DNA from: Basidiobolus meristosporus CBS 931.73
Taxonomy: Eukaryota; Fungi; Basidiobolomycota
Assembly (NCBI GenBank): GCA_002104905.1
Contig: MCFE01000486.1
Location: forward strand, 1 to 64,000
Reading direction: 5' to 3'
Length of the DNA: 64,000 nucleotides
Shown: positions 42,372 to 64,000 of the stretch, in pieces
Layout: each line of letters starts with the position of its first letter
How positions within the stretch are numbered: position 1 is the stretch's first letter
Translations under genes and position numbers: made by a program
Notes under the pieces: generated by a model
Databases searched by the model: none
Told to the model about the DNA's origin: nothing
Seen by the model: the letters and a program-made list of their open reading frames with translations, nothing else

Positions 42372-45300
42372 TGTTGTAAGAGTCTTGGAGATATTGGAAG
42401 TGATTTGGAGAACAAGTAGATTATGTGGTTTTCACTTAATGATTTATTGAATGTGAAAGTAGTATTTATACTTTTACATGGTCTTGGCATTACAAACACG
42501 TAGAATAGGTTAAGGAAGGTCCCAAGAACATGTGTGCAAGGTTTGGGGCTGTTTGGACAACTTTGAGAATTTTCATGTTCTGGGTACCTGGTATTTTGGT
42601 GAAAATATTCTAAGTAAATCCCGACAAGGAATTTGGTCAGTATTCTCTAGGATTTGAAGGTGATGATCTAAGTGACTAAGTTAGGTGAATATTTAGGTGG
42701 AAAATACGAATTTTTACAACACTCCCACTCAGCTAAATGTTCATACTGACTAGTCCTAATTTTGACCTAAAATATTCAAACTTGTCTTTAGCTAATGGTT
42801 TGGTAAATATGTCTGCAATCATTTCATCTGTAGGACAGTAAACTAAGCTAACTAAGTTATTCTCTATAGCTTCACGTATGAAATGATGTCTAATATCTAT
42901 GTGCTTGGTTCTAGCATGAAAAGTTGGATTTCTATCTAATTGTATACATCCTTGATTATCTTGAAATAAAGTAATAGGCGTTTTTTGACATAGGCCTAAA
43001 TCTGCAAAGAGCTTTCTTAACCACATTGCTTCTTTTGTAGCTTCACAGGCTGCCATATACTCTGCCTCTGTAGTAGAAAGTGCTACGGTTGGTTGCTTTC
43101 TTGAATTCCATGAAATGGCTCCTTTACAGTAAAGAAAGGTGTATCCTGTGGTGGATCTTCTGTCTTCTAAATTTCGTCCCCAATCAGCATCAGAGTATCC
43201 CACAAGATCCTGTTCTGAATCCTTATAAGTGTATCTTAAGCAGATATCAGCAGTACCTTTTAGGTATCTAAAAATCCGCTTAACTGCTGCAATATGATCA
43301 GATCCATAATTCTGATTATGTTGGCTGACAACTCCCACTGAATATGAGATATCTGGACGTGTTCCAAGCATGATATACATCAGACTGCCGACCATAGATT
43401 GATAAGGAAAGTCAGGGCTTTCAGATGGCACCAAGCTCTCTTGATTTGGTTGAGTTTTGACCAAGTTAAGGTTTGTCTCCATTGGGGTAGCTGCCGGTTT
43501 ACAGTCTTCCATTTTGTACTTCTTTAGTATATCTTGAATATACTTGGATTGGCTTAGGGTAATAGTCTGGGTACTTCTGTCTATGGAGAACTTAATCCCT
43601 AAGTAGTAACTAAGTTCTCCTAGATCGGACATCTTGAACTCCTTAGATAGGCTGGATTTAGTCTCTTCCAATGTTTCTAGGTTATTGGCGGCTATAATAA
43701 GATCATCCACATATAGAGCTAATAGAACTGGATTTGCTCTATCTGGCTTATAGTATATACTATAGTCAGCATTACTCCTTTTGAAACTCAAAGATTCCAA
43801 ATAAGAATCTATCTTGCAATTCCAGGCTCTCGGTGATTGTTTGAGACCATATAGTGACTTTTTAAGCTTGCAGACCAAATGGGGGTTATCTTGGTCAACA
43901 AACCCATCAGGCTGGTCCATATACACGTCCTCATCAAGTTCTCCATTCAAAAATGCAGTTTTTACATCCATTTGATGAATAAAAAACTTATATTTGGCTG
44001 CAATAGCCAATATTAATCTGATGGAATTAAACTTGGCTACCGGTGCAAAGGTCTCAGTATAGTCAAGTCCTTTTGTTTGAGAGTAACCTTTGGCTACAAG
44101 TCTTGCTTTGTATCTTTCAATTGTACCATCAGCCTTGTATTTTGTCTTAAAGACCCATCTGCATCCAATTGATTTTTGGTTGATTGGTAATTTGACTAAG
44201 TCCCAAGTTTGATTTTCCATCAGGGCCTGATATTCCTCAGTCATTGCAGATCTCCAAAACTTTGTCTGAGGGCTATTTAGGGCCTCTTTTACAGTCTGGG
44301 GTTCATCAACATGGACTGAATAGGCATAGGCTAAGTTTGTACCCTCATTGATATAGTAATTTGGGCTATTTCTTGTCCGATTGGATCTCCGGGCATTTGA
44401 TACTGGAATGATCACTTCTGGGATATTCCTGGGCACTGATTCTGGCTGAACCACGGTTGTAGAGTCCTCTGGAGTGAAAAAATTTTCATTGTTTTGCTCT
44501 GATTCAATCCTGACAATTGGTGGACTTGAGATCAAATTTTCGTCATCATCTGATGTCATTTTTTGTGAAAATTTTGAATTTTCATCAAACAACACATCCC
44601 TGGACTTGATCAGCTTCTTTGCTTCGGTATTGTAGAGTCTGTATGCCTTACTCTCATTGCAGTAGCCCAAAAATATGCATTTTACACTTTTTGGCTCAAA
44701 TTTTGACTGATTTCCGGCCAGTTTTTTGGCATATGCTGTACACCCAAATATTCTTAGATGTTCTGCACTTGGTCTGTATCCATACCATGCTTCAAATGGA
44801 GTAGAATCACGAAGTATTCTGTTATAACTCCTATTTTTAAGATATACAGCAGTGGCAACTGATTCCGCCCAAAAATCATAGGATAATTTTTGATCATGGA
44901 TCATAGATCTTGCCATATCAATTATTGATCTGTTAGCTCGTTCTGCTACTCCATTTTGCTGTGGGGAGTATGGTACAGTAGTCTCTTGCTTTATCCCATG
45001 AATTTTGCAGAAGTGGATGAAGAGTTTTGAGGTATATTCTCCACCATTGTCAGAGCGTATTTTCTTGATTTTTTCACCAGTTTCTCTCTCCACCATGGCT
45101 TTAAACTCCCTGAGCTTAGACAGAGCTTCTTCCTTTCTCTCCATGAAGTAGACCCATGTGTATCTTGTATAATCATCAATAAAAGTGATTAAATACTTCA
45201 TCCCGCCTAAGGATAAATTTTGCATAGGTCCACACAGATCTGAGTGAATTAGATCTAATTTTTTCTTAGTTTTGATTAACCCAGAGCTCTTGAACGGTTG

Positions 45301-47058
45301 TCTGGCTTGTTTCCCATATATGCAGGCTTCACAGTGCTCCAAATTAGCTGGGGGATCAATTTTCACTCCAGAAATTAGCTGATCTTTGATCATTTTACGC
45401 AAATAATCAAAATTGATGTGTCCAAATCTCCTGTGCCAAAGCATTGGTGTTTCTTCATTTAAGTTACTTATATTGGCTTCCAGATATGATGGAATATAAG
45501 TCAACTTGTATAGGTTCTGATCTCTGATGCCCGAAGCAATATGAGCACCATTTTGATCAGTGATCCTGCATCCAGAATTGTCAAAACTGAAACTGAGTCC
45601 TTCTGCTGTGGCCTTGCTTACAGAGAGTAGGTTCTTGGCTATTTCTGGTACATAGAGTACTTCTTTAAAGGTCAGTGTATGGCTTCCTTCACTGCTTCTA
45701 AGGTTTACTTGGATAGTTCCTTCTCCCACTGCATCAAGTGTTCTATCGTCACCCATGAAAACCTTCTTAATTGGAATTTCTTGATATTGGGTAAAAAGTT
45801 CTTTTTGGTGTGTAAAGTGTTGAGAAGCTCCAGAGTCAATATACCACGTCTGAGAATCCTTGTTTGTGGTCATATTTAGTGCAGATATGAATAGTCTATC
45901 TTCAGTTGTTGCAGCATTTCCATATTCAGGCTTCTTTTGCTGATAATCTCTCTTTTTGAAACACCGGTCTGATGTGTGTCCTTTCCTTTTGCAGTAGTTG
46001 CAAAATAGGTTGCTGTTGCCTTTGTAGGGTCTTGGGTACCTCCTTTGTTGGTTATCATTGCTTATTAAAGCATTTTCTTCTTCCTTCTTATTGGCGCTTG
46101 ATTTTCTTAATTCTTCATCCAGGAGCCTTCCATATACGTAATTTAAGGTCAAATCTTCAGTTCTGGACTCTAGGGCTGATACAAGGCCCTGAAACTCGTC
46201 TGTCAGGCTATTCAGGATGGTAACTATCACATCCTCATCAGTAGTTGGTACGCCCACAGATTCCATCTCATCTACCAGCAGGGTAATTCTGTTAATTAGA
46301 TTTTTCATTTCTTCTCCTGGCAGCATCTTTGTAGTAAAGAATTTTCTTCTCAGATACATTTTCTTGGCAGCTGAACATGACTGGTAGGTGTCTTCTAATG
46401 CCTTCCAGGCATTCTTTGCCGTTTTTGCTCTTGAGCATTGAATTAGCAATTTGTCCTTGACATTAAGGCAAATGCAGTTAAAGGCACTTTGTTCTTTCTT
46501 CTGGTACTTTAAGGCTTCCTCTCCCACGTTTTTAGGAGGGCATTCTTCTCCCATGACAATATCCCAAAGGCCTCTTTCTTGCAGCAGCATCTTCATCTTC
46601 ACCTTCCACACTTGGTAGTTAGATCCATCCAACTTTTCAGCAGAGGGAAAAATTCCAGTAATAGCAGTAGTAGACATTGCAGAGAGTGACAGCTTGGGGC
46701 TCATAACCTGTTGTAAGAGTCTTGGAGATATTGGAAGTGATTTGGAGAACAAGTAGATTATGTGGTTTTCACTTAATGATTTATTGAATGTAAAAGTAGT
46801 ATTTATACTTTTACATGGTCTTGGCATTACAAACACGTAGAATAGGTTAAGGAAGGTCCCAAGAACATGTGTGCAAAGTTTGGGGCTGTTTGGACAACTT
46901 TGAGAATTTTCATGTTCTGGGTACCTGGTATTTTGGTGAAAATATTCTAAGTAAATCCCGACAAGGAATTTGGTCAGTATTCTCTAGGATTTGAAGGTGA
47001 TGATCTAAGTGACTAAGTTAGGTGAATATTTAGGTGGAAAATACGAATTTTTACAACA
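42372..47058 (-). mobile_element. Intact Ty1/Copia LTR retrotransposon (LTRs 42372-42721 and 46709-47058; TSD AAATA)
   Basis: 350-bp TG..CA LTRs with 2 mismatches seen by eye. PBS at 46696-46708, PPT gagtgggag, and an uninterrupted gag-pol. Confidence 0.97.
42733..46836 (-). CDS. Copia gag-pol polyprotein (gag, CCHC knuckle, protease, integrase, RT, RNase H); true start may be the MSPK at the PBS
   Basis: CNYCKRKGH, WYIDSGASQH, LWHRRFGH..CEAC, IHSDLCGP/SDNGGEY/NGVAER, LYVDD and GYSDADW/TEAEY/DNQG/ADIFTK, in Copia order IN-RT. Confidence 0.97.
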   Translation of the reverse strand: MFVMPRPCKSINTTFTFNKSLSENHIIYLFSKSLPISPRLLQQVMSPKLSLSAMSTTAITGIFPSAEKLDGSNYQVWKVKMKMLLQERGLWDIVMGEECPPKNVGEEALKYQKKEQSAFNCICLNVKDKLLIQCSRAKTAKNAWKALEDTYQSCSAAKKMYLRRKFFTTKMLPGEEMKNLINRITLLVDEMESVGVPTTDEDVIVTILNSLTDEFQGLVSALESRTEDLTLNYVYGRLLDEELRKSSANKKEEENALISNDNQQRRYPRPYKGNSNLFCNYCKRKGHTSDRCFKKRDYQQKKPEYGNAATTEDRLFISALNMTTNKDSQTWYIDSGASQHFTHQKELFTQYQEIPIKKVFMGDDRTLDAVGEGTIQVNLRSSEGSHTLTFKEVLYVPEIAKNLLSVSKATAEGLSFSFDNSGCRITDQNGAHIASGIRDQNLYKLTYIPSYLEANISNLNEETPMLWHRRFGHINFDYLRKMIKDQLISGVKIDPPANLEHCEACIYGKQARQPFKSSGLIKTKKKLDLIHSDLCGPMQNLSLGGMKYLITFIDDYTRYTWVYFMERKEEALSKLREFKAMVERETGEKIKKIRSDNGGEYTSKLFIHFCKIHGIKQETTVPYSPQQNGVAERANRSIIDMARSMIHDQKLSYDFWAESVATAVYLKNRSYNRILRDSTPFEAWYGYRPSAEHLRIFGCTAYAKKLAGNQSKFEPKSVKCIFLGYCNESKAYRLYNTEAKKLIKSRDVLFDENSKFSQKMTSDDDENLISSPPIVRIESEQNNENFFTPEDSTTVVQPESVPRNIPEVIIPVSNARRSNRTRNSPNYYINEGTNLAYAYSVHVDEPQTVKEALNSPQTKFWRSAMTEEYQALMENQTWDLVKLPINQKSIGCRWVFKTKYKADGTIERYKARLVAKGYSQTKGLDYTETFAPVAKFNSIRLILAIAAKYKFFIHQMDVKTAFLNGELDEDVYMDQPDGFVDQDNPHLVCKLKKSLYGLKQSPRAWNCKIDSYLESLSFKRSNADYSIYYKPDRANPVLLALYVDDLIIAANNLETLEETKSSLSKEFKMSDLGELSYYLGIKFSIDRSTQTITLSQSKYIQDILKKYKMEDCKPAATPMETNLNLVKTQPNQESLVPSESPDFPYQSMVGSLMYIMLGTRPDISYSVGVVSQHNQNYGSDHIAAVKRIFRYLKGTADICLRYTYKDSEQDLVGYSDADWGRNLEDRRSTTGYTFLYCKGAISWNSRKQPTVALSTTEAEYMAACEATKEAMWLRKLFADLGLCQKTPITLFQDNQGCIQLDRNPTFHARTKHIDIRHHFIREAIENNLVSLVYCPTDEMIADIFTKPLAKDKFEYFRSKLGLVSMNI

Positions 47059-47469: not shown

Positions 47470-50400
47470 AATATAAGCCTACTCTTCATCAATACACTCA
47501 ACAGCTTCATAGATCTTCAATGTATTTTGACTTTAAGGCTTGGGTATAAACACAACAGTCTATCCCTCCCATGCTATGTTAGATTTTTCTGCAGGCTTTA
47601 TTGTTGGGCACTGTTGTTGTGCTTCAAAGGCCATACCATGTTCCCCTATTGTCACATTGAGAAATGGCTCAACTCGTAACTGTGATATTGAGCTACTTGA
47701 GCTCCTTCTTTGCAGTAAAGATACTGCAGTCTCTGCTTGGGGTACTGATTGCTCTACATGTATTATCCTCTTATCCTGTCACTGGACTATTCCCTGATTT
47801 CTCTGGGCTTTTGCATCTGTCCATCAGTCACTGCAACTAATTGCCTCATTGATGATTTGGCATGAGCTAACAACATAGTTGCCAATACTGGCAGTGGTGA
47901 TGTTACAATGGCTACTGTACCGCTTCTTGCTTGGGCAGACTGCTTTCATTGACCTATCCATTGTCCTCTACCATAATCACTGCCAGATGTGTTACTGCTA
48001 CTTTGCCTGTATGCTGCTTGCAATGTGCTAGGAGTTTCATAGGTAAGTACAGCACTGCTGCATCTGTTTCTGCCTGCTTGTCCTTTAATAGCACTCTTCT
48101 AGCTATCAGACATCTTTCTGCCACTTGATCTCAGCTTTGACAGGGATTGTGACTGATTCATGAGGCAGCTGCTGGCTTTTAGCTATGACAGCCTTGTACT
48201 TCTGCTTTGAAAGTTTCTGCTGTTCTTGCAATATTTGGTTAGCATATCATTGCTGGCCCAAAATGAGCCCCCTACTGTGAAGAGGTCACATAAGTCCATT
48301 AGAGCTTACTTATCTAACTAGATGAAAAAAGTATGAATAAAGCTTGCTGAACCTTGTGATTTAGTGTGTGTCTCAACAAAATTAAGATTGTGTCTCAGCA
48401 AAATTAAGATTCAACAATTCTGTTCTAGTTTCCATTCAAGCTTAGCATATCTAGCACTCCCAGGAACACCAAGCCTAAATTGCATAGCAATCCAACTCTG
48501 TTGCCATTATAGCCAAACCATGCCCTATGCGAGACTAACATCCAATCAGAATCTCTCTGCTAATATTTCAGCCACTCTCTGACAATTCTAGGACTCTGCA
48601 CTTAAGGTTTGCACTTCTGGTTAAAATAACAGAGCTGGTGCTCCAATGTCACCCAATGAAGTATATGGATTGTCTTTTTTAGGTCTTTTTTGAAATATGT
48701 CATAGGTTTTACTGCAGTGCCCAGTGCCTAGCTCATGTAAGCACCAGCAATACTAGTGAGTACATCCAGGCAGTAGGTGGGTAGTCTTCAACCTAGATTC
48801 TAATAAGTAGTGACTCTTCTACACATGGCTTTCCCTACTGATTCTAGACGTACCTGGCAATCTTTTCAACTTTGAAAATCCATTATTACCCAGTGATGCC
48901 TTTATATGGGCACTAGACTGTTGTGCTTGCCAAGCATATAGATCCTGCTCTTTGACCATATGTGCTGCTCTTTACCTATATACAGCACTTAATATTGGGG
49001 ACTCTGGGCAGTGCAGGCTTGCATATATATCTCACTATGGCCAAAGGTTGCTTTCAGCTAGCAATCAAGAAAGCTTGAGACACAAACTGTGTGGGTTATT
49101 ACTGACTGTACTTGGTGAGTGGGAGAGCTTGTAGGTCAAGTCAGTACCACTTGGTTCAGAATAGCTTCCAATAGGAGGTAGTAAGGTAATAAAGACTTGT
49201 GTTTATTTTGTCCCAAATCTCCTTGTTCTCTTGCTTGGTTCAATTGGGTAGATATATATCACTTGGGGGCTTAGATAATAGACAATGTGTTATAAAATAG
49301 GGGTGTGAACACCTTCCTATTATGGTAAGTGTTCTAACTAGATAAGGGCAGGGATAGGAGGGAGGGCACGTGGGGGAATCATAGGGAGGATACTGGGGGA
49401 CTTTGGGTAGGACTCTGGGGAGAACTCTTGGGTGAAGAGTGGGTACTGCATTTAGTACTCACAAACTGCAGTCATTTATAAATATAACTCATTCATATCT
49501 TTCTTCCTTTGAAAGTATCAGCAAGAGCTGAGGTGAAAAGGGGTTAGTAAAGCAGCTAGTTAGTCAAGTGAAGCTCTGTAAGAAGATAAGATCAGAAAAG
49601 ATCAGCACAATACTGTAATACTGTTAGCCAATTGCTAAGTTTTGCAACCCTTAATATATGAGATACTAAGTATTTGACAAATAGGTATTTCTGTCTTCCA
49701 ACAGATGAGTGAGCCTGCCAGCATTCATACCAAATATGTTAAACAACTACTCACTACTCCCACCAAAAGTTGCACCTCCAAGTTTAGAGAAAAAACACTG
49801 GGTGAATGCCAGCAAAAACCTGAGAGAATACCATCAAAATACTGGCAAACTATCAGATGGACTTCCTGTTAGAGGTTTTTGATAGGGACTATGTCTATAA
49901 TGCTCAATAATAGAGGTCAAGTGAGCAAAGACTTGAAAACATCTGAAACTGGCAAGTGTGCATGGATGCTCATTAGTAGCTGTCAGGACAAAGCTAGCCT
50001 ACCACTAAATTTTTTGTTTTCATATTACACAATGTGGACTCATAACTTTTGTAGCCAGCATACACCATAGAGGCAGTGTCCTGGGGTAAATATTAGTTTT
50101 GGCTAGTTGCAACTATTAGATGTAATTTGCTGTAGCATGATTATCACTGGGCATTTGCATTGATCCTAATCTAGTAATCTGCTTAGCCTATGCACACTAT
50201 ATTATGGCTGCTAGCTAGTAAAGTTATTTACAAGTTCTGGAAATAGCATCCTAGCCACCCTTGACATATGTATTGCTGAATATACTTCTATGTCATCATG
50301 CCACTGCTCTCACTTAAGATTGTATTACTCACCTCCTTACTTTGTTAGCTAGAACTTGCTGCTACTAGAATATTTAATATTAAGGCATGTATACAAGCTG

Positions 50401-50550
50401 CCAGCTGAGGGATGATGATTTGGGGCTGTTGCTGTTTAGGTAGATAAAGGGTCTGCTAATGGCCTGTACTTGAGCAAGCTGATAAAATTTTGATAGTGCA
50501 TTGGCCTTACCAAACAAATGGCCATTGATGATGAGCTTCAAAAATAGGAC
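47470..50550. other. Unclassified CpG-depleted TE-derived relic
   Basis: Very few CG dinucleotides and no intact ORF; family not recognised. Confidence 0.3.
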
Positions 50551-51511
50551 CATTACAACCGTGATTACTCACTTGTTAGAATTCACTCACACATATCTGA
50601 GAAACCTTACTTCTCAATCAATGGCAGGTCTTCTTTGCTGAAAGCTAACGTCTCCTGATAACAGGCTCCCAACCACTGAGCACATAGCTTGTTGGTATAA
50701 AATATCTGAGATTAAAAATATGGGATTGGTGCAACAAGCAAGAGGAAGGAAAGCTGGGTGACCACGTGGCAACTTCCCTCATGAAATTGACAACCTTCTG
50801 CCACTTTCTCTATGCCACTCAAGCTACTAATTAATTATTAATAATGGAAACAGTACTAGCGCGTATGACACCAACAGCGGTAGCAGCGGTAATAGCAGTG
50901 CTGGGAACGGAGGGACTAGCAATGGTGGTAATGACGGGAATGCAGGAAACAGGGCTGGAGGCTGTGATTCTGAAGGTGGTGGTGCCGGGGATAGAGGTGC
51001 TGGCATGGAAATGATAAATAAGTAATGGCAATAACGATGTCAACAAAAGCGGAGGCCAGTGTAACTAAAATGTAACATAGAATTGTTTGTAACTCAGTAA
51101 AGTATCTACCATTTCAATGGCCCCAGGATTCAGGCCAACATGCACTGGTGTACTCAGTATATACTGCTTTTCATGATTCTATTTGGCTCTCCCAGATTAT
51201 CCAAAATAACAGCATAGATAAACTGCTGCTTACGACACTCTGTAACAGGCTGCACTTGAAACAACAGCATATGTAGCCTCGGAAATGCTTGGCATTCCTG
51301 GTATCGGGTTTTGCAGTCAGAAATACATATAACAATAACCATGCAACTTTTGTTCGTTTATTAGTCAAAACAAGTAAAGCCATATTTCTTTGGGTTATCC
51401 TTGCATAAGTTACTAAAATGTACTTAGGCACTGTGCGTAGTGGTCTTCGTTTCATACAATCAATCTGGACAGAAGCCAGGCACCAGAAATCCATTGGCAG
51501 TGTTTACATGA

Positions 51512-52180
51512 CTAATAGTCATAATTCTCGAAAGGATTCATGGTAAACGGAGCTTTGTAGCCATTTTTTGGCATCATGGGTAACACCACACTACTGCGAA
51601 GTCCATTCTTGATCATATTTTCGGTGGCAGGGATGATTGTGTTATACTGAGATCCAGGACCATGTGGGATCATACAAACACGTTCTCCGACACAGTTGGG
51701 TTCGCTATAAAAGCAATAGATGGCTTCGGTAGGCCAGTAAAGGACAAAGCCTCCGTTATTCTCAACGGGGTCAATGTTTGCGCACTGCCTAAACTCAGGA
51801 TACGTGATGGGGAAGCCATCCACGCCGCTGGCATCACTGGCTAAAGAAATTGTCGCAGTTGCGGCAACAGTTTCGTTGACATCGTTGTCCTCAATGGCTG
51901 CTTGGTTGGCCGGGCTACTCCAGATCAAAAACCTTGCATCCAGCTCTGATGCCACCACCCCGGAGAACCATGCAGGGTTGCAAACAGGAAAGCCTCCATA
52001 TAGATTCTGCGCCTCTTCGGAGTTGTTACAAGGAGCATCAACAGGGTACTCTTGCTCAATCGGTGTGGAAGTAAGCGCAGGAATCTTCCCCGTGAGGTCA
52101 AGAGTGATCCCGGTAGGCTTAGCTAAGGCAGAAGCAGCAAGCACGGTCCAAACAGCTAGGGCGGTCAAGCGAAGTTGCAT
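51512..52180 (-). CDS. Secreted protein of unknown function (intronless, about 222 aa)
   Basis: Signal peptide MQLRLTALAVWTVLAASALA; Cys motif YCFYSEPNCVG near the C-terminus. Confidence 0.7.
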   Translation of the reverse strand: MQLRLTALAVWTVLAASALAKPTGITLDLTGKIPALTSTPIEQEYPVDAPCNNSEEAQNLYGGFPVCNPAWFSGVVASELDARFLIWSSPANQAAIEDNDVNETVAATATISLASDASGVDGFPITYPEFRQCANIDPVENNGGFVLYWPTEAIYCFYSEPNCVGERVCMIPHGPGSQYNTIIPATENMIKNGLRSSVVLPMMPKNGYKAPFTMNPFENYDY

Positions 52181-55100
52181 ATTAATCTTTGGGGTTGGGA
52201 TGCTCCACAAATACACGCATAGCATCTATTATATACCGATGATGCCCCTGCTTCCCTCCGTTGTCTGACTGATGCCTTATCGCAGTGGAAAATTCCATCC
52301 GTCTGATTTTTGCTTGCTATCATTTTTCCACCTCATCCTACCAGACACTAGGTGGCAACAGCATCTTGACCACGCCAAGCAGCCGCAGAGGTATTCATGA
52401 AAGTGGAATATTCTATTACGCTACTCAATATAGTAATGCAAGTGGTTGTTTGTCAGTACAACATTCTAGCTGCTTCCTACCGACCAACTTGGTGGAGTGG
52501 TGGTCAACACTGCAACACATGTGAAAAAAGATAGATTTACCAAAAGGGGCTAGTCAAAGAAGTAGATATCAAATGAGAGCACGAGTGAGGTATATCCTTG
52601 TATATATGTCATGTATCTACTTGCTCCTACAAAACTGACCCGATGTGTAAGATGCAAATTTATTGGTCTTACCAGGTCTGTTGTTATTGACCCAAGGATG
52701 AGGGATAATACAGCCAGTGTGAAATTATTTGGTGTGTCACAAGATCGCACAATATGAATATTGATGCACCATCTGAGTTGTACATTAGCCTTGAACGCTG
52801 CCTTCTAAGCTTCATGTTATGGATAGCCTCAGTGAGGAGAATTGATGGTCTTTTTTTATTCATAGAATCATCATATTCTGCGCCTAGCCAATGGTCTATT
52901 GTAATTTGGCTTCTATTTTCATTGCTCGTAATACTTGTATGTACTTCCATTTTTGGCGAAATTCGCCGATAAGGAATAAATATGGTTTGAGAATGTAGTT
53001 ATCACGAACAATCTTTATTACTAATCCCAAGTAGCTCGATCAATCTGTATGAACTTGTATGGGCAAATGGGGTTCAAGAAATTGGCATTTACATCATCAT
53101 TGCGGTGCTGAGCTCTTCAAACAATGCATAAAGGAATGAGTCAATTTCAGATGGCAATTAGAAGTAAATAAGCTCGATTGTAGCTAATACCGAGCTCAGA
53201 GATGTCAGTGACTTTTGATAAAACAACAGTAGCTCAACATGAATGGATGGGAGCGGTAGCATTTCAACCAGAATTTGATGATCATACTGCCATTGCAGTG
53301 AATCATAAAAAACGCTTTGCCCCAAGTCGAAGTATTTTGCTACAATATGTGAGAAAACTAAACACACCAAGTGCTGCTGATAAGTGTGGTTTCTCAGGGA
53401 GATATGGGATATTGCAATATAATCAGCAAAACCGCTTTTTTATTATCTCTCATTGTTAGTTGGACTGGGGGAAGACACAGCTCAAATGCTGCATAGACAA
53501 GTTGTTTAAGAGGAAACTCTATTCTAGACGGTTATTTAGATACAGTAATCACTCCCACAAGCATGTGAAGTGCTCAGATGACAAGTACTATGCTGCTCCG
53601 TAAATGCATCATTGTGATGAAGTCTTTAGTGAGGGTAGGAGGGTGACAGTCACCATAAAGTGAAATCTTTATTTCAATAACTCATAATAACGAAGCAAAG
53701 TGCGATATGTGTAGCTTTTTAACAAGTGAACAAAGAGAGGTATCTTTTTGCGACAGCTTATATAAATGACTACTAAGCTGAAAAGGAGTCAAGACAGGGT
53801 TAAGTGGCTGTGGGGGTATAACTGAAGGAGGTAATGGGTTATTGAGAGGAGCTAATGATATTTCATATAACAAAGTCATTTTTGGCTACATCGGCGGTGA
53901 CCTACCAAGGTGGATCGCCGCGTGATAAACAGAATCTGTTGATCAACATTTAGATGAATAGCCTCTCATTTGCAGTTGTAAATACCGATACTTTCATCTT
54001 CCAAATCGTTTTCTGGATTGAATTTTATGAAGGATTTACTGTTTTGTCGACTACATTGCCGGATTTTGAGTCATGCCTCAAACGGTACTGAATTTATTTC
54101 TACCACATTAATTCAGTTTTTTATTGAGCAGTTAGTAACAGGAAGCTGTCGTACGCACACGGCAAAGTACTGACGCTGCTAAGTGTATGTTTCATTTGAT
54201 AGCGATGGTGTGCTTACTAACTTGGACCTGGCTTAGTGCTCCATTTCTTTCGATTCCTTTTGACGCGACTCGGTCAGGCGCTATTAATAAGTATATATTA
54301 AAAGAAATAAGTACCTGAACCAGTACCTATTTGAGCTATATATGTACAAATCAACATTCAGTAATGCACTCGAAAGGGCTCGAGAAGTGGCGTTAAATAA
54401 AATCTCTTCCCAATTTTCTTACTGTATATTCGTCCATGGATTAACAAATCGATCACATATACTTGTCATCCGCAAGCAGAAGTAGCCGTAGCAAGAAACG
54501 AAACCTCCAGGATTTGATTGGATGGCTTGTAAAGCATCATCATTAGCGGCAATTCTATACAGCCATTCACCCACACTGACTTTCGTTTAGAAGACGAAAT
54601 GGACCTTAGACTCAGCTCAGAGGTATATGAAGCCTATATTAGCTCTCATGAAGTCCAAGAATCTATTGTCTGCCACAGTTACCTAGAATATACATTTTCT
54701 TCAATAGATTCACGATTGAACCACTGTACCATGAACGTTTTGATTACGGGAAAGGCTTACAATTGGCCTATAACAACCTTTTGAGCACCAATAAAGATCC
54801 CTGTTGGATGATTTAGTAGAAGCCAAATTTCGTGGTGGCTCTGTTACTTATTTCGGACAGTAATCATGATGAAATATGGGTGATAATCCATCTCAAGCAA
54901 CGAACGGATATCCTGTAAGCTGCCATGACAATTGTTTTACTGACGTAAAGACTGTCCAAATCAATTTTCAAGTGCGATTCTGGAAGCCCAGACCAAAATG
55001 CATGCTCAAGGTGGGTAAAGATATTGTCTACACTACCTCAATTGTCAAGGAGAGGCATAGTGCCGAGTCTGAGTTAGCGGGCATCAAAGCCACCGCCTAT

Positions 55101-55729
55101 CATTTCCATCAATCGGTAATCGAGATATCCGACGCGCAACATATGGTAACCAGTTACCGAATTGAGTGGTGATACATGGAAACTTGTGATAATATTCAAG
55201 TCAAACTACAAATAGAAGCGTTTCAATGGATACGTTTTATCATCCGAAGGATATACTAACCACATGTGCATGCCATATTTTTCATAAAATTGCCTGCAAT
55301 GCACCCTGAGACCAATCTACTGAAATCCAGCTAGTCGGGAGTGATACACGATATAATCTCAAATACCATCTTAGAGCTAAGTAGTTGATCAAAAACCCGA
55401 TCCGGAAATCGTACACAGATCTACACAGATATTCGGTGGTCATTGGCTGGCTCCAAATTTATTTGGCACACTGCGGAACCCAGAAAGTCAACTGAAATAA
55501 CCATATATGGCAATGATGGAAATAACGACCAGGCCTTCAATTGCCAATATCAGACAGAAAATGTGATCTAACCAGCACAGGCTAAAACGCCGCTCATAAA
55601 AAGTTTGATCGTAATTGTCGGTGCAACACGTGATACCTGAATTTATTGATGGTAGTTCGCAAAAACGGTGTAAACGCATTACACTTGGTGACGAGCAACA
55701 CGAGAGTGCTGAACATGTAAAGGGCACAA

Positions 55730-56722
55730 TTACTGTGCCTTTGCGGTCTTCTTGACTTCGAACCGGCGGTTGGTCGCAGGGGCATCATATTCCAGTTTAG
55801 TGGAGCCTTTACAGTAAGCATCAGTGGTGCCACAGTAGCCATAGCTGGAGCAGCAGTAGCCAGGTTGGCACTGACGCATCACATCTCCAAACCAGCCACA
55901 ACGTCTATCAGTTTGATTTGCAACAACAATGTCTATTCCCAAATTATTGGGATCGTATGGATACCACTGCCATTGTATGGGTTTGTTGTTATATCCATCG
56001 TAGCCAGCCGGGCCGTTGATAGACATCCAGATAGCCGTTTTATTATCTGCGAAGCCTGCACCCCATGTGCCGTCGGGACCAGGATATGTATAAGATATTG
56101 AGCCACCGAGCGAGGGGTACCAATACTTGGCGCCATTATGTTTGTAGGCTTGTTTACTCCAAACGCCCACGCGCATTCCATTGTCGAGTCCCTGGGGATT
56201 TTCGAGAAATTGGTCGAAGCGGCCAAGACCATTGCTTAGGTTGTCGTTGATAACCCGCAGTTTACCAAATAGCATCCATTCGTCATCAATACGTAGTTGG
56301 GCTGTGTAGATCAAATAATCACCATCCTCCTCGTAATCAATCTGGAAGCCGTAATCCACTCCATCAAGCCATGGATAAAAGTACTGCATGTGGGACCCAG
56401 TGCCCTCGTGGCCAAAGCGACTAGTCACACACTCCTTGCATGTCTCCACTACGGTTGCTCGTCCTTTGGAGTTGTCCCAGAGAGAGAAGAGGAATACACG
56501 TTTTTCGGCCCATGTCTGCATTCCCATATATCCGTTGTTCCAGCCGATGGCCTCCCAGTAAGTTTGGTTGGGACTAAATTCAGGAACAGACCTAACGTCA
56601 GTCTGAAAGGAGATAAACTTCTTCCCATCATCGGGGAGACTGGCATGGTTGTGCATTGCCTGCGAGAGCACCTTTGCTGCGAACAGCGAGGTAAGCGAGA
56701 GGAAAAGAGTTGGAAGCTGCAT
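55730..56722 (-). CDS. Secreted DUF3472-like + hevein/CBM18 chitin-binding protein (copy 1)
   Basis: Signal peptide; GW..GYMGMQ..RVFLFSLWD, FGHEGTG..YPW..G..Y.F and QFLEN (DUF3472-like); C-terminal CG.....CQPGYCCSSYGYCGTTDAYC (CBM18). Confidence 0.8.
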   Translation of the reverse strand: MQLPTLFLSLTSLFAAKVLSQAMHNHASLPDDGKKFISFQTDVRSVPEFSPNQTYWEAIGWNNGYMGMQTWAEKRVFLFSLWDNSKGRATVVETCKECVTSRFGHEGTGSHMQYFYPWLDGVDYGFQIDYEEDGDYLIYTAQLRIDDEWMLFGKLRVINDNLSNGLGRFDQFLENPQGLDNGMRVGVWSKQAYKHNGAKYWYPSLGGSISYTYPGPDGTWGAGFADNKTAIWMSINGPAGYDGYNNKPIQWQWYPYDPNNLGIDIVVANQTDRRCGWFGDVMRQCQPGYCCSSYGYCGTTDAYCKGSTKLEYDAPATNRRFEVKKTAKAQ

Positions 56723-57789
56723 GATATTCTACCGAAACATGGAACTCGACCATGCTTATAAAGCAGTTCCATTTTGCCAACACAACGATCACGTTTCGTT
56801 ACAAATTATGAGAACAAGCAGAGATTTCACCCTGATTTAGTAGTGGATGATTGTGCTCTACTATTGTGGCAACTCGGGTAGTTGAGTACCACTTAGTATG
56901 AAATGAATGGATCCTCAATGGTGATCCACGGATAAATAACATCGTTGATGATGGTTTCATGCGGCTTATAGAAGATTCCAAAACTAAAGGTATCTTACAT
57001 ACTGGTCTTGATAAATGACGGTCCAAGGAAGGATTATCTGAATTCGGATGTAGCTGCTCCTACAGTGCACACATGACGCATTAGTATACAGTCAGTGAAC
57101 CTAGAGTGTTCTATCATAGCGCGAGGAATTCGGAACTACAATAATGGCATAGGCTATAAGCAGTAACTTGTGCACAACCCTCTTTCTTCTCAGCAATTGT
57201 GAAGCTCGGAAGAGGCTATACCAACACCACAGCCATCGAGGGTCAAATCCAACGCTTCAGTTAGGAAATATAGACATTCTTCACCATGCGCCAAGGAGCA
57301 CGAGCATGGCGGATGCAATATCCTGGTGAGACAGTTTGCCAAAGATGAGTTGTAATGTGCACACTACTCCAGAACGTCAACACATTCTAGCATATCTACT
57401 AATAATGATCAGTGTCTAAAATGCGGTGGCGATAGCCTGTCCACTGCTCATTTCACAAATTACTCACACATTTGGAATATAGTTTAGCCATACCGCACGT
57501 GATATTTCAGCGTTCCTCGCGTATCATACCTTCATAGACACTCTCATAGAACTTCATAGTATCCGGGTGTATAAGGTTAAGGTTCCGATTGCTTGACTTA
57601 ATAAATGTTCCGATTAAGGTTAGTTCAATGTGGCCAATAGATTACCTAAAATAATCTTTGTCGAGATTCCGATTTAGAGTTAGCATTATGTTTCAGTAAG
57701 GAGCTGAGCATCATGGAAAATCACACTAAACTCCATTTTTGACCAAGCCGATAAACACATAGATTTCCCTTTTCTGAAAGTATCATTTG

Positions 57790-58120
57790 ATTTGGTTGAT
57801 GCAACCAGGGTCCGATTGGTGGTCGACAAATGTGGGATGGAGGATTGATAGGTGATGCGAGATAGAGGTATCTGCGGGCTGGCCAAGCCTTTTGATCTTG
57901 CCAAAGATTTGCTTATATGGAAAACCCCACTTAAAAATATGGCTTAGGGGCTCGTCGGAACACTTTGAAAGATAAACATTTGCGCAGACCCGACATACTC
58001 CCCATTTCCAGGGCTTCGTGACAGATCTTGCATCAGCTTCCTGTTCCGTCAGAAGTAAATCTGGAAAATACCAAAATTTCCCGGATTGATTGAACTGGAA
58101 CAACATGACTTATGACCAAC
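57790..58120 (-). pseudogene. Remnant resembling the N-terminus of an MFS monocarboxylate (Mch-like) transporter; mirror copy at ~59110-59440 (+)
   Basis: NFGIFQTYF and YVG(S/P)AQMFIF resemble SFGVFQxYY and WIGSxQxF. In-frame stops are present in both copies. Confidence 0.4.
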
Positions 58121-60504
58121 ATTCAGCAAACTCATTGGGCAATTGGGATACTGAAGCCACTGTTTAGTGCTTCGGGGCGTAAGTATGTGGCCAATCATTA
58201 TCAATATTAATAAAGAGAAAAGTTAGGATGCGGGCATTGTGGTAATGGCCAGGTGAGGGAAAGCCACCAGTATAGTGAGATCTTTATCTCACTCAGTATG
58301 TACAAAACTACTAAAGCTAAGGTAAGGAAGCCAGGAAAGTGTTACTCACCATCCCAAGTAAGCAATCTAGAACTTTGTTTCTTGGTTACGTTGCCCTGAA
58401 TTGAATGAAGCCACTTACTCAAATGGCTTGCAGCTATTATTCTTACTTGCTCCAGCTGTGTTACAACCAGTATCTATTTCTAGAGCTTCTGTGTTAAACT
58501 ATGTACTGTTGTCATCCTGTAAAAGCACTAAAATTCTCACCATAAGATGTACATCCCTACCGGCTTAAATTTTTGCCATATTTTTGACTGCAAATATAGA
58601 TCTCACCAACTCTTATTGACTTTTCCTCCTTCCTAGCGCTAAGTAGCGCTCCCACAAGATTTCATGCTGGCATATCTTTGCCGACTTTGTGCCAGTTACT
58701 GTTCTAGCTGTAAAGTTACTGAGAGCAGAAAAGCCCAAACTGTATTATTTATTCTATAGAAAAATGCCATTTATAATATGTAATTTCCCAACGCACTTTG
58801 ATTTTCTCTTCTCCTGAGAGTAACCTCATATAATTCAGTGCAATATCACCCAAGAAACAAAGCTCAAGTTAGACTATTTACTAATGATATTCAATTAATC
58901 TTTGCGGCCTTCTTTACTTTAGCCTTGGTAACTTTGTACCTACTTAGTAAGATAAGGATCTCACCATACTGGTGGCTTTCCCTCCCCTGACTGTTACCAG
59001 AATGCCTGCATCTTAACTTTCCCCTCTATTGATGCTAATAATGATTGGCCGCGTACGTGCACCTGAAGCACGGAACAATGACCTCGGTATTCCAGTTGCC
59101 CAATGAGTGATTGTGTGTCGATTGTTGATAATAAGTCATGTCGTTCCAGTTCAATCAATCCGGTAAATTTTGGTATTTTCCAGACTTACTTCGGACGGGA
59201 TAAGAAGCTGATACAAGGTCTGACACAAAGCCCTGGAAATGGGGAGTATGTTGGGCCTGCGCAAATGTTTATCTTTCTAAGTATTCCGACTAGCCCCTAA
59301 GCCATATTTTTAAGTGGGGTTTTCCATATAAGTAAAATTTTGGCACAACCAATAGGCTTGGCCAGCCCGCTGATACCACCATCTTGCATGACCCATTGAT
59401 CCCCCATCACATATTTGTTGTCCATCAATCAGACCCTGGTTGCATCAACCAAATCGAATGATACTTTCAGAAAAGGGAAATCTATGTGTTTATCGGCTTG
59501 GTCAAAAATGGAGTTTAGTGTGATTTTCCATGATGCTCAGCTCCTTACTGAAACATAATGCTAACTCTAAATCGGAATCTCGACAAAGATTATTTTAGGT
59601 AATCTATTGGCCACATTGAACTAACCTTAATCGGAACATTTATTAAGTCAAGCAATCGGAACCTTAACCTTATACACCCGGATACTATGAAGTTCTATGA
59701 GAGTGTCTATGAAGGTATGATACACGAGGAACGCTGAAATATCACCTGAGGTATGGTTAAGCTATATTCCAAATGTGTGAGTAATTTGTGAAATGAGCAG
59801 TGGACAAGCTATCGCCACTGCATTTTAGACACTGATCATTATTAGTGGGTATGCTAGATTGCGTTGACGTTCTGGAGCAGCGCGTACATTGCAACTTATT
59901 TTTGGCAAACTGTCTCGCCATGCTCGTGCTCCTTGGCGCATGGTGAAGAATGTCTATATTTCCTAACTGAAGCGTTGGATTTGACCCTCGATGGCTGTGG
60001 TGTTGGCATAGCCTCTTCCGAGCTTCACAATTGCTGAGAAGAAAGAGGGTTGTGCACAAGTTACTGCTTATAGCCTATGCCATTATTGTAGTTCCGAATT
60101 CCTCGCGCTATGATAGAACACTCTAGGTTCACTGACTGTATACTAATGCGTCATGTGTGCACTGTAGGAGCCGCTACATCCGTATTCAGATAATCCTTCC
60201 TTGGACCGCCATTTATCAAGACCAGTATGTAAGATATCCTTAGTTTTGGAATCTTCTATAAGCCGCATGAAACCATCATCAACGATGTTATTTATCCGTG
60301 GATCACCATTGAGGATCCGTTCATTTCATACTAAGTGGTACTCAACTACCCGAGTTGCCACAATAGTAGAGCACAATCATCCACTACTAAATCAGGGTGA
60401 AATCTCTGCTTGTTTTCATAATTTGTAATGAAAAGTGATCTTTGTGTTGGCAAAATGGAACTGCTTTATAAGCATGGTCGAGTTCCATGTTTCGGTGGAA
60501 TATC

Positions 60505-61497
60505 ATGCAGCTTCCAACCCTTTTCCTCTCGCTTACCTGGCTGTTCGCAGCAAAGGTGCTCTCGCAGGCAATGCACAACCATGCCAGTCTCCCCGATGAT
60601 GGGAAGAAGTTTATCTCCTTTCAGACTGACGTTAGGTCTGTTCCTGAATTTAGTCCCAACCAAACTTACTGGGAGGCCATCGGCTGGAACAACGGATATA
60701 TGGGAATGCAGACATGGGCCGAAAAACGTGTATTCCTCTTCTCTCTCTGGGACAACTCCAAAGGACGAGCAACCGTAGTGGAGACATGCAAGGAGTGTGT
60801 GACTAGTCGCTTTGGTCACGAGGGCACTGGGTCCCACATGCAGTACTTCTATCCATGGCTTGATGGAGTGGATTACGGCTTCCAGATTGATTACGAGGAG
60901 GATGGTGATTATTTGATCTACACAGCCCAACTACGTATTGATGACGAATGGATGCTATTTGGTAAACTGCGGGTTATCAACGACAACCTAAGCAATGGTC
61001 TTGGCCGCTTCGACCAATTTCTCGAAAATCCCCAGGGACTCGACAATGGAATGCGCGTGGGCGTTTGGAGTAAACAAGCCTACAAACATAATGGCAGCAA
61101 GTATTGGTACCCCTCGCTCGGTGGCTCAATATCTTATACATATCCTGGTCCCGACGGCACATGGGGTGCAGGCTTCGCAGATAATAAAACGGCTATCTGG
61201 ATGTCTATCAACGGCCCGGCTGGCTACGATGGATATAACAACAAACCCATACAATGGCAGTGGTATCCATACGATCCCAATAATTTGGGAATAGACATTG
61301 TTGTTGCAAATCAAACTGATAGACGTTGTGGCTGGTTTGGAGATGTGATGCGTCAGTGCCAACCTGGCTACTGCTGCTCCAGCTATGGCTACTGTGGCAC
61401 CACTGATGCTTACTGTAAAGGCTCCACTAAACTGGAATATGATGCCCCTGCGACCAACCGCCGGTTCGAAGTCAAGAAGACCGCAAAGGCACAGTAA
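60505..61497 (+). CDS. Secreted DUF3472-like + hevein/CBM18 chitin-binding protein (copy 2)
   Basis: Mirror copy of 55730-56722, differing by two residues (S12W and an A->S in HNGAKY). Confidence 0.8.
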   Translation: MQLPTLFLSLTWLFAAKVLSQAMHNHASLPDDGKKFISFQTDVRSVPEFSPNQTYWEAIGWNNGYMGMQTWAEKRVFLFSLWDNSKGRATVVETCKECVTSRFGHEGTGSHMQYFYPWLDGVDYGFQIDYEEDGDYLIYTAQLRIDDEWMLFGKLRVINDNLSNGLGRFDQFLENPQGLDNGMRVGVWSKQAYKHNGSKYWYPSLGGSISYTYPGPDGTWGAGFADNKTAIWMSINGPAGYDGYNNKPIQWQWYPYDPNNLGIDIVVANQTDRRCGWFGDVMRQCQPGYCCSSYGYCGTTDAYCKGSTKLEYDAPATNRRFEVKKTAKAQ

Positions 61498-64000
61498 TTG
61501 TGCCCTTTACATGTTCAGCACTCTCGTGTTGCTCGTCACCAAGTGTAATGCGTTTACACCGTTTTTGCGAACTACCATCAATAAATTCAGGTATCACGTG
61601 TTGCACCGACAATTACGATCAAACTTTTTATGAGCGGCGTTTTAGCCTGTGCTGGTTAGATCACATTTTCTGTCTGATATTGGCAATTGAAGGCCTGGTC
61701 GTTATTTCCATCATTGCCATATATGGTTATTTCAGTTGACTTTCTGGGTTCCGCAGTGTGCCAAATAAATTTGGAGCCAGCCAATGACCACCGAATATCT
61801 GTGTAGATCTGTGTACGATTTCCGGATCGGGTTTTTGATCAACTACTTAGCTCTAAGATGGTATTTGAGATTATATCGTGTATCACTCCCGACTAGCTGG
61901 ATTTCAGTAGATTGGTCTCAGGGTGCATTGCAGGCAATTTTATGAAAAATATGGCATGCACATGTGGTTAGTATATCCTTCGGATGATAAAACGTATCCA
62001 TTGAAACGCTTCTATTTGTAGTTTGACTTGAATATTATCACAAGTTTCCATGTATCACCACTCAATTCGGTAACTGGTTACCATATGTTGCGCGTCGGAT
62101 ATCTCGATTACCGATTGATGGAAATGATAGGCGGTGGCTTTGATGCCCGCTAACTCAGACTCGGCACTATGCCTCTCCTTGACAATTGAGGTAGTGTAGA
62201 CAATATCTTTACCCACCTTGAGCATGCATTTTGGTCTGGGCTTCCAGAATCGCACTTGAAAATTGATTTGGACAGTCTTTACGTCAGTAAAACAATTGTC
62301 ATGGCAGCTTACAGGATATCCGTTCGTTGCTTGAGATGGATTATCACCCATATTTCATCATGATTACTGTCCGAAATAAGTAACAGAGCCACCACGAAAT
62401 TTGGCTTCTACTAAATCATCCAACAGGGATCTTTATTGGTGCTCAAAAGGTTGTTATAGGCCAATTGTAAGCCTTTCCCGTAATCAAAACGTTCATGGTA
62501 CAGTGGTTCAATCGTGAATCTATTGAAGAAAATGTATATTCTAGGTAACTGTGGCAGACAATAGATTCTTGGACTTCATGAGAGCTAATATAGGCTTCAT
62601 ATACCTCTGAGCTGAGTCTAAGGTCCATTTCGTCTTCTAAACGAAAGTCAGTGTGGGTGAATGGCTGTATAGAATTGCCGCTAATGATGATGCTTTACAA
62701 GCCATCCAATCAAATCCTGGAGGTTTCGTTTCTTGCTACGGCTACTTCTGCTTGCGGATGACAAGTATATGTGATCGATTTGTTAATCCATGGACGAATA
62801 TACAGTAAGAAAATTGGGAAGAGATTTTATTTAACGCCACTTCTCAGAGCCCTTTCGAGTGCATTACTGAATGTTGATTTGTACATATATAGCTCAAATA
62901 GGTACTGGTTCAGGTACTTATTTCTTTTAATATATACTTATTAATAGCGCCTGACCGAGTCGCGTCAAAAGGAATCGAAAGAAATGGAGCACTAAGCCAG
63001 GTCCAAGTTAGTAAGCACACCATCGCTATCAAATGAAACATACACTTAGCAGCGTCAGTACTTTGCCGTGTGCGTACGACAGCTTCCTGTTACTAACTGC
63101 TCAATAAAAAACTGAATTAATGTGGTAGAAATAAATTCAGTACCGTTTGAGGCATGACTCAAAATCCGGCAATGTAGTCGACAAAACAGTAAATCCTTCA
63201 TAAAATTCAATCCAGAAAACGATTTGGAAGATGAAAGTATCGGTATTTACAACTGCAAATGAGAGGCTATTCATCTAAATGTTGATCAACAGATTCTGTT
63301 TATCACGCGGCGATCCACCTTGGTAGGTCACCGCCGATGTAGCCAAAAATGACTTTGTTATATGAAATATCATTAGCTCCTCTCAATAACCCATTACCTC
63401 CTTCAGTTATACCCCCACAGCCACTTAACCCTGTCTTGACTCCTTTTCAGCTTAGTAGTCATTTATATAAGCTGTCGCAAAAAGATACCTCTCTTTGTTC
63501 ACTTGTTAAAAAGCTACACATATCGCACTTTGCTTCGTTATTATGAGTTATTGAAATAAAGATTTCACTTTATGGTGACTGTCACCCTCCTACCCTCACT
63601 AAAGACTTCATCACAATGATGCATTTACGGAGCAGCATAGTACTTGTCATCTGAGCACTTCACATGCTTGTGGGAGTGATTACTGTATCTAAATAACCGT
63701 CTAGAATAGAGTTTCCTCTTAAACAACTTGTCTATGCAGCATTTGAGCTGTGTCTTCCCCCAGTCCAACTAACAATGAGAGATAATAAAAAAGCGGTTTT
63801 GCTGATTATATTGCAATATCCCATATCTCCCTGAGAAACCACACTTATCAGCAGCACTTGGTGTGTTTAGTTTTCTCACATATTGTAGCAAAATACTTCG
63901 ACTTGGGGCAAAGCGTTTTTTATGATTCACTGCAATGGCAGTATGATCATCAAATTCTGGTTGAAATGCTACCGCTCCCATCCATTCATGTTGAGCTACT

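Follow-up and report, generated by a model that had tools for sequence, protein, structure and literature searches.

The 64,000-nucleotide window analysed here comprises positions 1 to 64000 of the 67,699-bp contig MCFE01000486.1 (contig 486) from assembly GCA_002104905.1 of the fungus Basidiobolus meristosporus CBS 931.73, and its right-hand end lies within a large palindrome, in which two inverted arms bearing the same two genes surround a short unique spacer. The genome was obtained by PacBio sequencing (PMC7466969), and members of the genus are reportedly at least diploid, with many small chromosomes, copy-number differences and allelic variation (PMC3281927). The gene nearer the spacer is a single exon encoding a 330-amino-acid (aa) protein with a hydrophobic N-terminus, a DUF3472 domain (PF11958) and a hevein-type chitin-binding module (CBM18, PF00187); its left copy occupies 55730..56722 on the minus strand and its right copy 60505..61497 on the plus strand, so that the pair stands head to head. 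Farther out on each arm is a 222-aa gene, the left copy at 51512..52180 on the minus strand and the mirror copy beyond the window, at contig positions 65048-65716; its product has a hydrophobic N-terminus and is without a Pfam family. The 3.8 kb between the start codons of the two DUF3472-CBM18 copies hold only short open reading frames (ORFs), none of them called as a gene, and a hidden protein gene in this centre was rejected on that ground. The inverted repeat is present in the assembled sequence far above chance expectation, and its repeat detection and gapped alignment rule out chance or low complexity as the source.

As assembled, the left arm (A) runs from 49502 to 58414 and mirrors contig positions 58824-67699, its outer limit being set by the opposite contig end: the right arm (A') extends to the last base of the contig, 67,699, which mirrors 49,502. 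The arms are thus at least 8.2-8.9 kb long and truncated by the contig end. An earlier note on this DNA had described long inverted arms of at least 5.2 kb around a unique spacer of about 380 bp, and had proposed alignment past 64 kb as a check. The inverted arms and their short unique spacer are borne out by gapped alignment, and arm identity does persist to the contig end, but the spacer measures about 410 bp (58415..58823, where the arms are about 50% identical and hence unrelated); the limit of 53228 given for the left arm was only a reflection of the window edge, since the mirror continues to 67,699.

Arm-to-arm identity was profiled by a gapped alignment of 53228-58640 with the reverse complement of 58601-64000. 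Over 53228-56126 the arms are 100% identical apart from a single 1-nt indel at 54381/62846, and over 56127-57226 they are 95-100% identical. Inward of a 17-nt indel at 57311-57327, identity is 87-94% at 57327-57526, returns to 100% over a 267-bp island at 57521-57787, and then stands at 82-95% over 57788-58123, 74-84% over 58124-58319 and 65% over 58320-58414. The near-identity of the outer arms, the individual step values and the lack of uniform divergence (100% to 65% along the arm) all agree with what had been seen by eye; the steady fall towards the centre does not hold, as it is interrupted by the perfect island. Transitions and transversions among the arm-to-arm substitutions number 91 and 41, a ratio that is unremarkable as a sign of mutation resembling repeat-induced point mutation, and one in which polarity cannot be set for most differences.

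The same palindrome is found on a second contig, MCFE01000226.1 (contig 226), where it adjoins that contig's own end, and its right flank is unassembled in both contigs. We aligned all four arms, those of contig 226 being named B (left) and B' (right). Between 55.5 and 58.6 kb the A-A' and B-B' profiles match step for step (97.5, 91, 100, 88.5, 89, 80 and 62%), and 163 of the 170 inner differences between A and A' are common to both contigs, so the inner steps are inherited and are not a record of activity in contig 486. Farther out, at 51.2-55.5 kb, A and A' are 100% identical whereas B and B' are 80-97% identical. Arm identity in contig 226 peaks in a 1.8-kb block around the DUF3472-CBM18 gene (99-100%) and drops away in either direction; this independent copy lacks near-identity over its full arm length, being 80-97% identical outside the block. 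The block (55534..57310, mirror about 59917-61693) holds the gene, about 0.6 kb of sequence before it and about 0.2 kb after it, and its arms are 97.5-100% identical in both contigs, as against 62-92% farther in and 80-93% in the outer arms of contig 226, which are its most diverged part.

The coding sequences show the same focus on one gene. Between the two DUF3472-CBM18 copies of contig 226 there are 6 differences in 993 nt (0.6%; 99.4% identity), 3 of them synonymous; for the 222-aa gene the count across the arms is 51 in 669 nt (7.6%), 27 of them synonymous. Purifying selection cannot erase synonymous differences; the gene block has been homogenised by conversion within a much older duplication. 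The alignments show an old inverted duplication, head to head and at least 8 kb in length, with two genes per arm, whose arms have drifted to 75-93% identity; the 1.8-kb gene block has been kept at, or reset to, 99-100% by arm-to-arm gene conversion, and so, probably, has the 267-bp upstream island. Both the age of the palindrome and the action of arm-to-arm conversion, as the earlier note had proposed them, are upheld by these counts. The place that it had assigned to the conversion is not: the process is centred on the gene and does not fail at the loop.

The 267-bp island (57521..57787, mirror 59457-59723) is the same in all four arms of contigs 486 and 226. Each copy contains three TTCCGATT motifs within 92 bp (57583-57674 and 59570-59661), 0.86-0.95 kb upstream of the respective start codon, and these six are the only occurrences in the 64-kb window, where about 1.9 would be expected by chance. 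The cluster could be a candidate shared control element of the DUF3472-CBM18 pair, and the island as a whole may be a short tract of conversion or else a control element under constraint. Its predicted RNA folding is no better than that of shuffled sequences (z = +1.7 and +0.35), and an RNA or tRNA gene in the island or the palindrome centre was ruled out by the absence of any match to Rfam families or tRNA genes there.

Within this genome the DUF3472-CBM18 family is small, comprising the four palindrome copies, a 463-aa paralogue (84%) and a 278-aa paralogue (68%); contig MCFE01001198.1 (extract L006, 3745-5136) is the site of a DUF3472-CBM18 paralogue that is 84% identical. A search restricted to proteins of 0.55-1.75 times the query length returned no relatives outside this genome at E <= 1e-5. 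The region of the 222-aa gene is tandemly duplicated on both arms of contig 226 (extracts L001, 14343-17309, and L003, 7795-11161); the copies, which recur at periods of about 2.07 and 2.2 kb, are 95% identical. Contig 486 has one copy per arm. The start of contig 226 (extract L001, 18553-18575) has three interstitial TTAGGG units, 180 bp from the contig end and adjoining sequence that resembles the end of an element.

The perfect identity of the outer arms, which is private to contig 486, probably has a different origin from that of the gene block. From the spacer outwards to 61,097, the inner right arm (58824..61097) shows 0 differences from the right arm of contig 226 in 2274 bp, while the left inner arms of the two contigs differ at 9 positions in 2281 bp and the spacers at 2. 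Where 9 differences are expected, the Poisson probability of none is about 1e-4, and the right inner arm of contig 486 is therefore not an independent lineage. A' then changes type within a switch interval at 61097..61119, having right-arm letters at 61096/61097 and the left-arm letter at 61119, where B' differs. The switch is thereby resolved to 21 nt, in codons 198-205 of the right DUF3472-CBM18 copy and inside the 99-100% block; inward of it the sequence is of right-arm type and outward it is a left-arm mirror, which makes this gene copy a hybrid with a right-arm 5' part and a left-arm 3' part.

Beyond the switch, the outer right arm (61119..64000 and on to the contig end at 67,699) is a near-perfect mirror of 49502-56108, and it includes even the left flank at 49.5-51.1 kb, which is only 75-80% like anything in contig 226. 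Outer A' stands in the same relation to B and B' as A does, and at the outer sites where A and B differ it has A's letter at 69 of 71, an agreement that arm-concerted change and a fold-back copy would equally predict. Two marks of a fold-back are found, in that the mirror reaches the contig end and the switch sits where the true arms are indistinguishable. A missed-adapter hairpin read was considered and ruled out by the 410-bp spacer and the diverged inner arms at the axis.

Two short-read runs (X1 and X2) of one sample, flagged as a possible source of this DNA, were available as k-mer (Logan) contigs, which we compared with 55300-61200 together with those of a run from a related organism (X3; only three short contigs, all on the gene). 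Of the words sampled from a single-copy stretch of the window X1 and X2 contain 0.97, but for the palindrome core the share is only 0.79. In both X1 (1264 nt) and X2 (1097 nt) a single contig extends from one diverged inner arm through the spacer into the other, and the palindrome centre is therefore real. At inner sites private to contig 486 (56908, 57361, 57366, 57907 and 58569) the short-read contigs have the letter of contig 226, and so they do at the private outer sites 55375 and 55378, the letters of contig 486 being absent. At 55500/55507 a contig of 486 type is present in X2 only, at a depth of about 148 as against 231 for the 226 type, with no single-copy baseline for comparison; this hint leans weakly against two doses of the outer arm of 486 type. 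A three-marker haplotype across the switch region was seen in X2 only in its contig 226 right-arm form; the hybrid was not seen, although absence from contigs of this kind proves nothing.

Variants matching none of the four arms occur in the reads at 55875, 55907, 56527, 56646, 57006, 57028, 58767, 58792 and 59998, and the genome therefore contains more haplotypes than the assembly. A third paralogue was considered as their source and rejected, as the sole other relative, on MCFE01001198.1, is 84% identical and too distant for most of them. Two of these sites lie in the spacer: the short reads have T at both 58767 and 58792, the window has C at both, and contig 226 has a gap at the first and C at the second, which suggests either an error in the PacBio consensus or another haplotype of the spacer. 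Ten sites within 56378-58569 distinguish the left inner arm of contig 486, with the start of its spacer, from contig 226. At six of them (56378, 56708, 56908, 56988, 57361 and 57366) this arm has A/T where the other three arms have G/C, and the short-read contigs, where they cover these sites, show the G/C state only.

From these observations we infer that the perfect outer arms are not a property of the palindrome, as had been supposed, but a probable assembly composite, which in contig 486 begins at a sharp switch and runs to the contig end; probably no single DNA molecule carries both left-type outer arms. Such a composite could have arisen in two ways. An origin purely in silico, to which we give somewhat less than an even chance, would have the assembler join the arms by false overlap through the 1.8-kb identical block, which is flanked by 92-97% sequence, in an assembly graph already tangled by two loci of 99% similarity. 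A more tentative route starts from a crossover between the two gene copies that would flip the centre, the assembler then merging the flip and flop forms. Read backwards, a flipped molecule would present the inner left arm, the spacer, the inner right arm, a hybrid gene and then the mirrored left outer arm with its flank; the flip-flop invertible segment that the earlier note had raised as a secondary idea would thus itself be a possible explanation of the mirror end. On both routes the left-type outer arm stays at one copy, in keeping with the depth hint.

Several points weigh against a composite. The mirror is imperfect, with two substitutions that have the state of the sister contig (B), a 1-nt indel and a 26-nt deletion, and its final 1.1 kb contains 11 substitutions and one indel. 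In their character these differences look like natural variants rather than PacBio indel noise. Because of such imperfections, the outer arm of A' derives from molecules distinct from those behind A, and these could be a real second arm as well as an allele or another haplotype. PacBio reads would normally span a 1.8-kb repeat, so that a purely in-silico misjoin needs the tangled graph. The depth evidence, moreover, is weak, since it comes from bubble-popped Logan contigs, among which equivalent contigs vary by about 25%, and has no single-copy baseline.

The foremost alternative is that the mirror exists on one molecule. The right outer arm and flank would then have been replaced by a copy of the left, either through unequal recombination of the inverted gene copies between sister chromatids or through break-induced replication primed in the gene block, giving an extended palindrome or an isochromosome-like mirror arm. 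The two arm types join in register within the longest identical block, as repeat recombination predicts, and substitutions and indels peculiar to the outer right arm make it a physically distinct copy. The contig also ends about 9 kb past the last locus-private letter (58,569), roughly the length of one long read, which is expected where a long perfect palindrome stops an assembler, and the reported ploidy of at least two, many small chromosomes and copy-number differences of Basidiobolus (PMC3281927) would accommodate such an arm. We nevertheless consider it unlikely: the short-read depths lean weakly against a double dose of the 486-private outer letters, the right inner arm matches the sister contig without a private difference, the products would be unbalanced, dicentric or acentric, and the rise in divergence from 0.04% over the preceding 5.5 kb to 1% over the final 1.1 kb would need a second event. 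A real junction is required both by a mirror molecule and by merged isomers. That the hybrid junction is real in one form or another has nearly an even chance, and converted head-to-head pairs would then be recombination hot spots, either flipping the centre or, with the much smaller likelihood just given to a mirror molecule, making mirror-image arms.

A slim chance is left for other explanations of contig 486. It is very unlikely that contigs 486 and 226 are simple alleles of one locus and that the mirror end is the other allele wrongly oriented. Over 51,147-61,118 the two are 98.4-100% identical, and allelic variation has been reported in the genus (PMC3281927); to the left of 51,147, however, they are only 75-86% alike or unalignable for at least 11.8 kb, and contig 226 has the tandem duplicate of the 222-aa gene that contig 486 lacks. 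On account of these two differences the contigs are not ordinary alleles. An ORF look-up for an allele of the window's left flank on the contig 226 side found none, and no called genes lie there.

Least probable is the model of the earlier note, in which continuing conversion holds the whole arms of an old palindrome identical and fails progressively near the loop: conversion is real for the gene block and the outer arms of contig 486 are near-identical, but the sister copy is least similar in its outer arms and peaks at the gene, the mirror takes in a left flank with only 75-80% likeness to anything in the sister palindrome, its boundary is a single sharp switch and no gradient, and the inner steps, which had been taken as the sign of ongoing conversion, are unchanged between the contigs and hence inherited.

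Elsewhere in the window, 42372-47058 holds an apparently intact Ty1/copia retrotransposon, with long terminal repeats of about 330 nt that are 99% identical and a gag-pol ORF of 1367 aa (42733-46836, minus strand) containing RVT_2, integrase and gag domains. This copia family is further represented by older copies and solo repeats, at 1-6 kb and 37-42 kb of the window as well as on contig MCFE01001198.1. The palindrome itself was considered as a transposon with long terminal inverted repeats and rejected as such, since its arms bear ordinary secreted-protein genes and the closest mobile element is this separate copia element at 42.4-47.1 kb.

The firm part of these results belongs to a known kind, in which inverted duplicate genes evolve in concert through conversion that is confined to the gene. 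In Drosophila the inverted pair of Amy genes reportedly evolves in this way, according to work of Hickey and colleagues in 1991. The two systems share a coding region and proximal flanks that are near-identical while the rest of the duplication has diverged, and homogenised synonymous sites; the Basidiobolus palindrome differs in its arms of at least 8 kb, in a second duplicated gene that escapes conversion and in its separate 267-bp upstream island. With the ampliconic palindromes of the Y chromosome it shares inverted arms of large size around a short unique spacer, and gene pairs that show signs of arm-to-arm conversion. Y palindromes, however, are more than 99.9% identical along the whole arm, and those of human and apes are said (by Rozen and colleagues, in 2003) to be maintained by arm-to-arm conversion, whereas the independent Basidiobolus copy in contig 226 is only 80-93% identical outside its 1.8-kb block.

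The assembled right end can likewise be set beside known products of inverted repeats. Isodicentric Y chromosomes, idic(Y), reportedly form by inverted-repeat recombination (Lange and colleagues, in 2009), and long-repeat breakpoints are said to underlie structures such as i(5L) of Candida albicans (Todd and colleagues, in 2019). A hybrid repeat followed by a mirror of the other side is the product predicted by isodicentric or isochromosome formation, and it is what contig 486 presents; in Basidiobolus, however, the mirror is known from the assembly alone and the dose hint is contrary to two copies. Inversion isomers arise through inverted repeats in the flip-flop of the plastid genome and in the yeast 2-micron plasmid. 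Like these, the Basidiobolus locus has two long near-identical inverted blocks around a 5-kb centre and a hybrid junction of the kind that a flipped isomer would show, but it is nuclear and without a dedicated recombinase; the breakpoints of a flip would fall within blocks identical over more than 31 nt. Long-read fold-back artefacts at contig ends resemble it in a mirror that extends to the end of the contig from a point at which the true arms cannot be distinguished, and that is missing from the independent copy; they differ in that the axis here is a natural palindrome with a spacer and the mirror has a few substitutions of its own.

The gradient of arm identity in contig 486 should thus be read with caution, as a composite of ordinary gene-centred conversion and a contig-end mirror that probably does not exist as drawn. 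The concerted evolution that it conceals is clear-cut: in this early-diverging fungus a secreted DUF3472-hevein pair has been kept at 99.4% identity, far longer than its neighbour, within an old palindrome. Should long reads bear out the hybrid junction, this locus would offer a natural instance of inversion or mirror duplication mediated by a palindrome, in a fungus whose chromosome biology is unusual, and events of this kind could contribute to the many small chromosomes and copy-number differences reported for Basidiobolus.

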